Assembly: GCA_002269645.1 (NCBI GenBank)
Contig: NIVC01004688.1
Coordinates: 1-38,068 of the forward strand
Direction: 5' to 3'
Origin: Macrostomum lignano
Lineage: Eukaryota
DNA length: 38,068 nt
Made by a program: the position numbers and the translations under genes. A model generated the notes under the pieces. The model was not told the origin of the DNA and did no database searches. It worked only from the letters and a program-made list of their open reading frames with translations. Below are positions 407-3,004 of the stretch, piece by piece. The first letter of the stretch is position 1, and each line of letters opens with the position of its first letter.

Positions 407-3004
407 GTTGTGGACGCGGTCGTTATCGCCGTGTCCTTCGTAGCTGACGTCGTGTTCGTCAAACTCGAGTCCTCGGAGGTGTCCGTTATTGTCCTGTTCC
501 TGCTGTGGCGCATAGTCAGGGTGATTAATGGTAAGGGTTTCTCTGTCTCTCTGTTTGTCTGTCTGTCTTAGTGTCTGTCTGTCTGTCTGTCTGTCTGTCT
601 GTCTGTCTGTCTGTCTGTCTGTCTGTCTGTCTGTCTGTCTGTCTGTCTGTCTGTCTTAGTGTCTGTCTGTCTGTCTGTCTGTGTGTGTGTCTGTCTTAGT
701 GTCTGTCTGTCTGTCTGTCTGTCTGTCTTTCTGTCTGTCTGTCTGTCTGTCTGTCTGTCTGTCTGTCTGTCTGTCTGTCTGTCTGTCTGTCTGTCTGTCT
801 GTCTGTCTGTCTGTCTGTCTGTCTGTCTGTCTGTCTGTCTGTCTGTCTGTCTGTCTGTCTGTCTGTCTGTCTGTCTGTCTGTCTGTCTGTCTGTCTGTCT
901 TAGTGTCTGTCTGTCTGTCTGTCTGTCTGTCTGTTTGTCTGTCTGTCTGTCTGTCTGTCTGTCCTAGTGTCTGTCTGTCTGTCTGTCTGTCTTTCTGTCT
1001 GTCTGTCTGTCTGTCTGTCTGTCTGTCTGTCTTAGTGTCTGTCTGTCTGTCTGTCTGTCTTCCCTGTCCCTATTCTCTATGGCCACACAAAAGTACAATA
1101 AAGCCCCCCGCCCACAGGCCTGATGATGCACGAGAAGCAGCGGGACGAGTTCCGCATCCAGCTGCAGAAGCGAGCCCGAAGAATATCGGAGATGAAGTGC
1201 GAATCTCTGGAGAATGACCGCGACTTGCAGGAGGTGGGTCACGTGACTGCGAGAGAGAGAGTCAGCCACCACCCTATAGATTTCATCACGCCCCAGCCAA
1301 TCAGCGATCAGTTGGGGTAGAGGGAGAAATTTCTGCGTACATATACGTTAAAAATGTGTTTAAAAAACAGAGAAATAGTGTAGTGCAGTGTACTTTGAAT
1401 TATCAATTATCTGTCCGCAGAAGCACGCCATCATGCTGGAGGAGCTCTGCCGAGAACTTGGAGCCACCGAGGAACAAACTGCCAATTGCAAGCCAAAGTG
1501 TGAGGATCAGAATGGATTTGGGAGAGTTTCTGCTGGTCTACATGTGGTGTAGCGCAGCTCTATTAAATCACTGTCAATCTCGTTCTGTTTTCGCTTCACT
1601 TCCTTCCTCCTCCCTTCTTCGTATCCGCCTTTTCCTTCCGCTCTTCTTCCGCTCTCTATCCGCTCTCTATCCGCTCTCTATCCGCTCTCTATCGCGCTCT
1701 ATGCGCTCTCTATCCGCTCTCTATCCGCTCTCTATCCGTTCTCTTTCCGCTCTTCTTCCGCTCTTCTTCCGCTCTTCTTCCGCTCTCTATCCGCTCTCTA
1801 TCCGCTCTCTTTCCGCTCTCTATCCGCTCTCTATCCGCTCTCTTTCCGCTCTTCTTCCGCTCTTCTTCCGCTCTTCTTTCGCTCTCCTTCCGCTCTTCTT
1901 CCGCTCTCCTTCCGCTCTCTTTCCGCTCTTCTTTCGCTCTCCTTCCGCTCTTCTTCCGTTCTTCTTCCGCTCTCTATCCGCTCTCTATCCGCTCTCTATC
2001 CGCTCTCTATCCACTCTATCCGCTCTCTATCCGCTCTCTATCCGCTCTCTATCCGCTCTCTATCCGTTCTCTTTCCGCTCTTCTTCCGCTCTCCTTCCGC
2101 TCTTCTTCCGCTCTTCTTTCGCTCTCCTTCCGCTCTTCTTCCGTTCTTCTTCCGCTCTCTATCCGCTCTCTATCCGCTCTCTATCCGCTCTCTATCCGCT
2201 CTCTATCCGCTCTCTATCCGCTCTCTATCCGTTCTCTTTCCGCTCTTCTTCCGCTCTCTATCCGCTCTCTATCCGCTCTCTATCCGCTCTCTATCCGCTC
2301 TCTATCCGCTCTCTATCCGCTTTCTATCTACCCTTCCCTAACCCTACCCCCACAGTCGTGTGCATTAGCAAGCAGCAGTCCAACAACGCCGTGAAGTCCA
2401 TGGCAGCCATGTCTGCCGGCATCTTCGGCGGCATCGCAGCGTCGCATCATCGTCGCACTTTGAACGCCACATTCTCGACGGGGGAAGCGTCGGCTTCAGC
2501 AACGGCTTCGCCGGGTGCCTCCTCCTCGCGACTGGATCCCATCGCTGAGGACCAGGCCATTTCCATGGCGACCAACGGTGAAAACGGTGGCTGTCGGAGG
2601 CCACAGCTGACTCGACAGTGTAGAGATGATCTGGAGGATCCGTGGGAACTGCAGGTGAAAGTTTGGTCAGCACTGATTGGCTGGCTGGGCGATTATTGGG
2701 TATCTACCCCCTCTTGCCCACTGATCCAAGGGACGAGATCAATGGGAATCGTTGTTGGCTATCTTTCTATCCCCCGCTGCTCGCTGATTGGCTGGCTGGG
2801 GACGTGATCCAAAGGGAATTGTGGTTGGCTATCTATCTAGCCTCCGCTGCTCGCTGATTGGCTAGAATTGCGGGTCATTCCAGAATTTCTCTCCTCAACC
2901 CGCCGACCTTCCAGAGCACCTCGCAAGCAGTGGAGCTCCTAGAGCGTCAGTCAGGATGTGCAGATTCCGACTTCTGCATCACGGAGTACCTCGCAGCAGC
3001 CTGA
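407..3004 (+). CDS. HVCN1: Voltage-gated proton channel (Hv/HVCN1-family voltage-sensor protein), 5'-partial; exons 407-530, 1118-1233, 1421-1499, 2356-2654, 2915-3004
   Basis: All introns GT-AG with matching phases (1,0,1,0); 708 nt = 235 aa + TGA. Exon 407-530 encodes [17 protein letters not shown]...[16 protein letters not shown], matching Hv1 S3 ([16 protein letters not shown]) and S4 (LLILLRLWRVARIING), followed by a coiled-coil ([22 protein letters not shown]...). S1 with the selectivity Asp is outside the window, so the symbol is family-level and this may be a paralogue. Confidence 0.75.
544..1060. repeat. (GTCT)n microsatellite, ~125 units, in an Hv-like gene intron
   Basis: Read directly; source of the spurious SVCL/RQTD ORFs. 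Confidence 0.97.
1622..2330. repeat. 11-bp minisatellite (CCGCTCTCTAT / CCGCTCTTCTT variants), ~60 units, intronic
   Basis: Tandem pyrimidine-rich 11-mers within intron 1500-2355; produces the low-complexity middle of ORF 1356-2807. Confidence 0.93.

Follow-up and report, generated by a model that had tools for sequence, protein, structure and literature searches.

The window analyzed here is a 38,068-nucleotide stretch of DNA from the flatworm Macrostomum lignano (GenBank assembly GCA_002269645.1, contig NIVC01004688.1, positions 1 to 38,068 of the forward strand), and, as judged from its sequence, it opens with the 3′ half, from segment S3 to the C-terminus, of an already databased voltage-gated proton channel (Hv) gene. 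Hv conduction runs through the voltage sensor itself, and natural losses of gating charge show how its closed state is sealed. In this gene the first S4 gating arginine (R1, human R205) is replaced by leucine. Its product is probably a member of a spiralian Hv lineage that lacks R1, has a long S1–S2 loop and also includes AcHv3 of the mollusc Aplysia californica; within it, the protein would fall into a subgroup with a proline-free (Pro-less) LxWRxxR motif, and it is expected to be proton selective with a shallow voltage dependence.

Exons of the probable proton channel and their surroundings

The exon that carries the substitution encodes S3, a short linker and S4 (Table 1). Its borders are canonical, with a ccgcag/GTTGTG acceptor and a TTAATG/gtaagg donor, and it comprises 41 codons plus one base, starting in phase 0 and ending in phase 1; frame 1 alone is stop-free, both other frames being interrupted. 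Chance does not explain this reading, since an M. lignano protein named "Voltage-gated hydrogen channel 1" is matched by the spliced peptide at E=1.1e-33. In a HMMER comparison, the equivalent stretch of a second M. lignano protein with the same S4 (P0001), which includes LLILLRLWRVARIING, was aligned residue by residue to human Hv1 (5OQK). The register against the Hv signature RxWRxxRxxN is unambiguous because the Trp stands directly before the first Arg and the Asn three residues past R3. The signature is broken at R1, which is Leu, a change by which the accepted Hv3 subgroup is also defined; Trp, R2, R3 and Asn are present, as are both members of the Hv Asp pair in S3 (Asp185 and Asp174 equivalents). 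Because S4 holds no further basic residue, the voltage sensor has two charges.

Codons and alignment thereby bear out what the original prediction had read at this exon, namely an Hv-family S3–S4 exon with R1 changed to Leu and with Trp, R2, R3, Asn-Gly and both S3 Asp residues kept, a two-charge S4 in which we likewise found only two arginines, and the absence of the Pro found in the LPWRxxR channels of molluscs. The Leu at R1 is not a read error, since the identical S4 stretch occurs in two other M. lignano proteins (P0001 and P0002) that are only 84-85% identical overall; a motif kept to 100% in copies differing by 15% elsewhere also argues for constraint on it. On this sequence evidence the exon is real and its family assignment probably correct.

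The window exons are the locus of UniProt A0A1I8GWV1 (P0178), an M. lignano protein whose automatic name is "Voltage-gated hydrogen channel 1". By tblastn, its residues 117-323 map to the window exons, with exon 2 matching at 100% and the other pieces differing only where the alignment overruns exon boundaries, and its residues 1-116 (S1–S2 loop, S2 and S2–S3 linker) have no match within the window. A source in another Macrostomum species, to which the 85% identity to P0001 had pointed, was rejected on the 100% match of exon 2 to P0178. In Pfam, the window peptide alone gave sub-threshold noise only; P0001 and P0002, being longer, clear the Ion_trans threshold with about 30 bits. Rfam found no RNA family in the window. 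S2 of P0178 reads LHFVSIAILALFVSEVALK, and its segment LHFVSIAILALFVSEVALKIVCLG carries the H140, F150, E153 and K157 equivalents. Upstream of S2, this model has more than 80 residues of a non-transmembrane, Ser-rich S1–S2 loop, within which it is truncated, so that it does not reach S1. A profile made from the N-terminus and S1 of ten relatives matched cestode fragments only and no Macrostomum fragment, and exact-protein look-ups for P0001, P0002, P0178 and P0181 (a further M. lignano model) returned no contig on record.

Downstream of S4, the window exons encode about 190 residues and no S5–S6. Exon 2 contains an EFRIxLQKRARR segment that is typical of the clade and kept in flatworm, annelid and bryozoan relatives. 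The following junction, CKPK/FVCISK, restores the clade-conserved motif CKPxY..SKEQTxNALKSIAALTTG, and the splice model is independently supported because the C-terminal exons of the window reproduce motifs of full-length relatives. A short C-terminus, produced by reading through the donor of this exon to a stop at 1550-1552, was considered and rejected, as the CKPK/FVCISK junction is used in both UniProt models. After the CKP, about 70-95 residues past S4, the window (2356-2450) and its relatives share a hydrophobic segment of small residues, NA(L/V)KS(I/M)AA(L/M)(T/S)xGxxGG, which forms a helix in the AlphaFold2 model of the relative P0010 (residues 332-354, predicted local distance difference test score, pLDDT, about 72); the segment could be membrane-associated.

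In the P0178 and P0181 models, a splice that runs from about 2945 (C/gtcagt) to about 3562, ten bases ahead of the ATG of the next gene, fuses that gene in frame to the Hv reading frame, and the P0178 model continues through repeats and the antisense strand of a glyoxalase gene. The gene model is thus likely to be chimeric or polycistronic, and the site near 3562 may be a spliced-leader acceptor.

Table 1. Positions of the features found in the window, with the basis of each assignment.
Feature	Positions	Strand	Basis
3′ end of the intron preceding the S3–S4 exon, filled by a 20-bp minisatellite	1-406	+	TRF array 1-311, period 20
Exon with S3, short S3–S4 linker and S4	407-530	+	Translation, splice sites, tblastn of P0178/P0001/P0002, alignment to human Hv1 5OQK
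Asp, D174 equivalent (internal S3 countercharge), GAC	413-415	+	Alignment to 5OQK
S181-equivalent codon	434-436	+	Codon reading
Asp, D185 equivalent (external S3 acid), GAC	446-448	+	Alignment to 5OQK
Leu at the R1 (human R205) position, CTG	500-502	+	Same in P0001, P0002, P0178
Second Leu, directly before Trp (no Pro), CTG	503-505	+	Codon reading
W-R-I-V-R-V-I-N (conserved Trp, R2, R3, Asn214 equivalent)	506-529	+	Translation
Trp (W207 equivalent)	506-508	+	
R2, CGC	509-511	+	
R3, AGG	518-520	+	
Asn (N214 equivalent), AAT	527-529	+	
Gly codon divided by the intron	530 + 1118-1119	+	
Intron, largely (TCTG)n microsatellite, about 130 copies	531-1117	+	Repeat array 542-1060
Exon 2, helix continuing S4 into the cytoplasm, presumed coiled coil	1118-1233	+	100% tblastn match to P0178 and P0181
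Exon ending at donor AAAGT/gtgagg	1421-1499	+	Junction CKPK/FVCISK in P0178 and P0181
Conserved C-terminal segment, then low-complexity cytoplasmic tail	2356-2654	+	tblastn, relatives
Tentative last exon, ending in TGA	2915-3004	+	First 10 codons only supported, by P0178 and P0181
Glyoxalase I-type gene, two exons	6320-6538, 6662-6982	-	Pfam Glyoxalase, E=2e-12 and 4e-10
Non-LTR (long terminal repeat) retrotransposon, apparently intact	18918-24154	-	1234-residue open reading frame (ORF): endonuclease, reverse transcriptase, RNase H
ORF with weak, sub-threshold MULE transposase match (E=5e-4)	36584-37681	+	Pfam

The product of the gene that follows the channel (3573-5054, + strand) is rich in Cys and His at its N-terminus, has a coiled coil and is repeat-like in its C-terminal half; UniProt names it "B box-type domain-containing protein", Pfam gave no significant match for it, and the order of Hv followed by B-box gene recurs in P0181. 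The large ORF of the retrotransposon is preceded by one of 509 residues that has no Pfam match and is presumably ORF1, and the local GC content of the element reaches 0.58-0.63. A 247-residue ORF (35826-36569) adjoins the one with the weak transposase match. A block of about 9.5 kb (26400-35800), with 32% GC compared with about 50% elsewhere and with no ORF longer than 109 residues, may be a decayed transposon or a foreign insert; two arrays of 14-bp units in inverted orientation (25587-25765 and 26247-26411, GAACTTTGCTTGCC and GCAAGCAAAGTTCG) flank its start. At least 20 micro- and minisatellite arrays with periods of 4-106 bp lie in the window, for example at 1-311, 542-1060, 1637-2328, 5454-5922, 7051-7430, 8123-8880, 12690-13406 and 16389-17404, and the Hv introns are themselves filled by repeats ((TCTG)x130 and an 11-mer x63).

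Relationship to other Hv channels

HMMER was run exhaustively against 1.84 billion representatives and returned 928 matches at E<=0.001; the best 150 of the 928 were sorted into S4 classes, and each of these 150 has an Hv-type S4 segment. Classical RxWRxxR segments make up 79 of these, about 44 are (L/V/M)PWRxxR..NS segments of the AcHv3 type, and 22, including the window gene, are Pro-less (L/I/V)(L/I/V/M)WRxxR segments. The R1 position is hydrophobic (L, V, I or M) in all 66 R1-less matches among the best 150, and the residue before the S4 Trp is L, I, V or M in every one of the 22 Pro-less members. The top matches came from flatworms (Hymenolepis, Rodentolepis, Sparganum/Spirometra, Calicophoron, Clonorchis, Fasciola and Cichlidogyrus), and the next Pro-less matches from Owenia (annelid), Tubulanus (nemertean), Bugula (bryozoan), Lingula (brachiopod) and, as a single protein, Dreissena. 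Apart from a single Lingula protein and a single one from the nemertean Lineus, the Pro class is molluscan. Flatworms, an annelid, nemerteans, a bryozoan, a brachiopod or molluscs are the source of all 30 named R1-less proteins. The Lineus protein (P0054, L. longissimus) has LPWRxxR, although Brachiopoda and Phoronida are the only non-molluscan groups for which a 2023 review of Hv channels gives the Pro type (PMC10377628).

Full-length relatives share one architecture limited to S1–S4: an N-terminal KQLxKDNID region, an S1 with LVLLDAGIV, an S1–S2 loop of 100-250 residues, S2 to S4, and then EFRIxLQKRARR, CKPxY..SKEQTxNALKSIAALTTGxMGG and a long tail. At the S1 position aligned to human D112, which is the Asp of selectivity, they have Asp in all cases except one Glu; a profile of 13 Pro-less R1-less proteins aligned their LVllDagIV to the human LVVLDALLV. 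In the parasitic flatworm orthologues (among P0004-P0013) the E153 countercharge of S2 is replaced by Q, T, Y or C, whereas Glu is retained in the proteins of the free-living M. lignano; a second conserved charge of the sensor has therefore been lost in Neodermata.

Among solved structures, the best matches were human Hv1 5OQK (E=9e-14) and mouse Hv1 3WKV, with Ci-VSP at only 21.6 bits. The 13-protein profile matched 5OQK at E=2e-29 (106 bits), the voltage-sensor domains (VSDs) of Cav3 (T-type Ca channel) at 36 bits and Ci-VSP at 19 bits. The AlphaFold2 model of P0010 (mean pLDDT 67.8) has the expected helices and a continuous helix at residues 245-312.

A neighbour-joining tree, a distance method, was calculated from 112 long sequences over 203 columns with 200 bootstraps. 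R1-less and R1-bearing proteins were split in 173 of the 200 bootstraps (87%), and in 140 (70%) when R1 and the next column were masked; the window gene lay within the flatworm clade in 115 of 200. It groups with molluscan Hv3, apart from classical Hv1, at moderate support. In identity, the window piece stands at 48% to flatworm relatives, 34% to other Pro-less proteins, 27% to the LPW class and 28% to classical Hv1. For the region after S4, identity is 30-47% to Pro-less relatives and 16-18% to classical and LPW types. Compared with P0040 from Patella, which serves as proxy for an AcHv3 orthologue, the window piece is 26% identical, no closer than to classical Hv1. Because raw identity is this low, the link to AcHv3 is a distant one, resting on the tree and the common architecture.

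Predicted gating and alternative explanations

Precedents for an Hv sensor without R1 come from one native channel and several mutants. AcHv3 (Chaves et al.), which confirms the molluscan LPWRxxR subfamily named in the original prediction (PMC10911540, PMC10377628), combines this motif with a very long S1–S2 loop and large intracellular domains, and has a proton-selective leak and a voltage dependence of about 60 mV per e-fold (PMC10911540). That removal of R1 can open a closed-state leak, also part of that prediction, has been shown for the human cancer mutant R205W, which stays selective for protons but leaks while closed and depends less on voltage; in simulations the leak arises since R2 reaches D112 across the hydrophobic gasket (PMC11853527). 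In R205A, gating charge falls to 0.63x and activation becomes about 200x faster, and in CiHv1 R255N gating charge falls to 0.33x (PMC4969798).

By analogy with AcHv3 and human R205W, altered gating is likely in the window gene and a resting leak possible. With a selectivity Asp on S1, as in the full-length relatives, the protein would conduct protons selectively through its VSD, and it would probably dimerise through the helix that follows S4. The pairing between R1 and the S1 Asp that seals the closed state would be gone, and R2 could then bridge the hydrophobic gasket. Since each subunit would carry less gating charge, the channel would gate faster than classical Hv1 and with a shallower dependence on voltage. 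It would be better suited to an organelle membrane or to continuous acid–base handling than to acid extrusion triggered by depolarisation. Whether these analogies extend to a standing proton conductance at resting potentials we regard as an even bet. Among the three outcomes raised by the original prediction (altered gating, a resting proton leak, or no proton selectivity), the last is the least likely, because the relatives keep the S1 Asp and because AcHv3 and R205W are proton selective.

Several points weigh against this interpretation. The S1 and S2 exons lie upstream of the window, and the S1 Asp is deduced from relatives only. The tree is crude, with moderate bootstrap support and no TMEM266 or VSP outgroup, and the transfer of function from AcHv3 is weak because of the 26% identity to P0040. 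A Foldseek comparison of the P0010 model with PDB gave no match at E<1, those to Nav and SLC9C1 VSDs being insignificant. Arg-to-Ala mutants at R1 of human and mouse Hv1 have been reported without leak, and the Pro of AcHv3, absent in the window gene, unwinds S4 in molecular dynamics and may cause the leak of that channel (PMC10911540). In the literature searched, no electrophysiological recording of any member of the Pro-less subgroup was found.

Some of these points would be equally expected of a proton channel that still closes tightly, in which R1 loss only cuts gating charge and speeds gating, as in R205A, neither a resting leak nor any unusual physiology results, and Leu is a tolerated, lineage-specific substitution. 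R205A conducts at its reduced charge, studies that changed individual S4 arginines of human and mouse Hv1 to Ala reported no leak (PMC10911540), the Pro suspected of distorting the AcHv3 S4 is missing, and the gasket positions F150 and V178(I) are intact in the window gene and P0178. However, a hydrophobic substitution at the same site, R205W, leaks, as does AcHv3, the only native R1-less channel recorded, and the hydrophobic residue at R1 is fixed across a clade of 66 matches, a pattern more suggestive of a property under selection than of drift. We consider this explanation rather unlikely, although it is the strongest of the alternatives.

Much less probable is a non-conducting sensor like TMEM266 (C15orf27, HVRP1), or a protein that has otherwise lost proton selectivity, with the long cytoplasmic tail as its output. 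TMEM266, a close relative of Hv1, likewise consists of a voltage sensor only and has a long disordered tail beyond the coiled coil that follows S4 (PMC6392501), and the tail of the window protein appears disordered as well; its S1 lies outside the window, and the E153 countercharge is lost in the parasitic-flatworm orthologues. Some isoforms of the Lingula protein of the same subgroup (P0158/P0159) are even labelled "transmembrane protein 266" at NCBI, which is a naming trap. TMEM266, however, keeps three arginines in RxWRxxR, lacks Asp112 and Asp185, is reported from vertebrates only and carries no proton current (PMC4969798, PMC6392501), whereas the window gene is from a flatworm, is without R1 and has the equivalent of Asp185, a residue that among VSD proteins is reported for Hv alone (Table 1 of PMC4969798). 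Moreover, full-length relatives keep the S1 acid at D112, and AcHv3, with the same architecture, conducts protons.

An artefact, with CGG misread as the CTG one base away, or a decaying duplicate in the hidden polyploid, duplicate-rich M. lignano genome (PMC10468722), at a locus packed with minisatellites and transposons, is most improbable, as the same Leu occurs in three M. lignano proteins and all flatworm orthologues, every exon has an open frame and canonical splice sites, and the S4 motif is unchanged between the diverged copies.

Wider consequences would follow from a more ambitious and, on balance, doubtful reading that takes three things together: flatworm LxWRxxR proteins as naturally "half-closed" channels, an R1-less origin before the flatworm split, and a series of E153 losses in neodermatans. 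If so, a standing proton-selective conductance would require only the loss of R1 and not the molluscan Pro; the origin of the R1-less lineage would predate the split of flatworms from other spiralian phyla, earlier than the "early lophotrochozoan" origin that has been proposed (PMC10377628); and the flatworm series would be a graded natural experiment on the minimum charges for an Hv sensor.

The effects of R1 loss and of the Pro are inseparable in AcHv3 because it also carries this helix-breaking residue, and they could be told apart in the Pro-less proteins of flatworms, the annelid and the bryozoan. The laboratory flatworm M. lignano is amenable to transgenesis and RNA interference, and candidate roles of the channel are organelle acidification, acid–base handling in tegument or gut, and sperm.

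Comparison with known channels

The case is less novel than the original prediction implied, because the gene is already in UniProt and Pro-less R1-less channels are described in the 2023 review (PMC10377628). That review reports long-loop Hv channels without Pro in Annelida, Bryozoa and Nemertea, with examples in its supplement (Eisenia fetida GIUK01058977, Dendrobeania GJXY01243660 and Lingula LOC106155662), and lists a Macrostomum transcript accession without comment; the only flatworm channels in its text are two from Schistosoma, of the RLW type with a long S3–S4 loop. We found no publication treating flatworm Hv channels in the literature searched, and it seems that flatworms had not been explicitly placed in the R1-less lineage before. 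The find extends this lineage to Platyhelminthes, with an early-branching free-living member among them, and shows flatworm database entries named "Hv1" not to be classical Hv1.

The closest known counterparts are the Pro-less annelid, bryozoan, nemertean and brachiopod channels, represented here by Owenia P0016, Tubulanus P0019, Bugula P0020 and Lingula P0023. Like the window gene, they have an S4 of the form L-(L/I/M)-W-R-x-x-R-x-x-N without Pro, the EFRIxLQKRARR and CKP segments and a long C-terminal tail, and full-length members of the subgroup have the long S1–S2 loop and the S1 Asp; the window gene differs in its host phylum. With AcHv3 and molluscan Hv3 ((L/V)PWRxxR) it shares a hydrophobic R1 position, two S4 arginines and a place in the same neighbour-joining clade, and both lineages keep the S1 Asp (on the window side, in relatives), a very long S1–S2 loop and large intracellular domains. 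In contrast, the window gene has no Pro before the Trp, and its motifs after S4 differ from those of molluscan Hv3, HEHVKLRLLYSRKKK being among those compared.

Classical Hv1 (5OQK, 3WKV) has the residues whose equivalents are kept in the window gene at D174, S181, D185, W207, R208, R211, N214 and G215. It differs in having R205 where the window gene has Leu, in an S3–S4 linker that is two residues longer and contains His193, which the window gene lacks, and in about 50 residues after S4 compared with about 190; the long S1–S2 loop of the window gene, as expected from P0178 and the relatives, would be a further difference. The human mutants R205W, R205A and R205H are alike in that R1 is neutralised, but these are engineered or somatic changes in a classical background, whereas the substitution in the window gene is ancient, fixed and set in a diverged protein.

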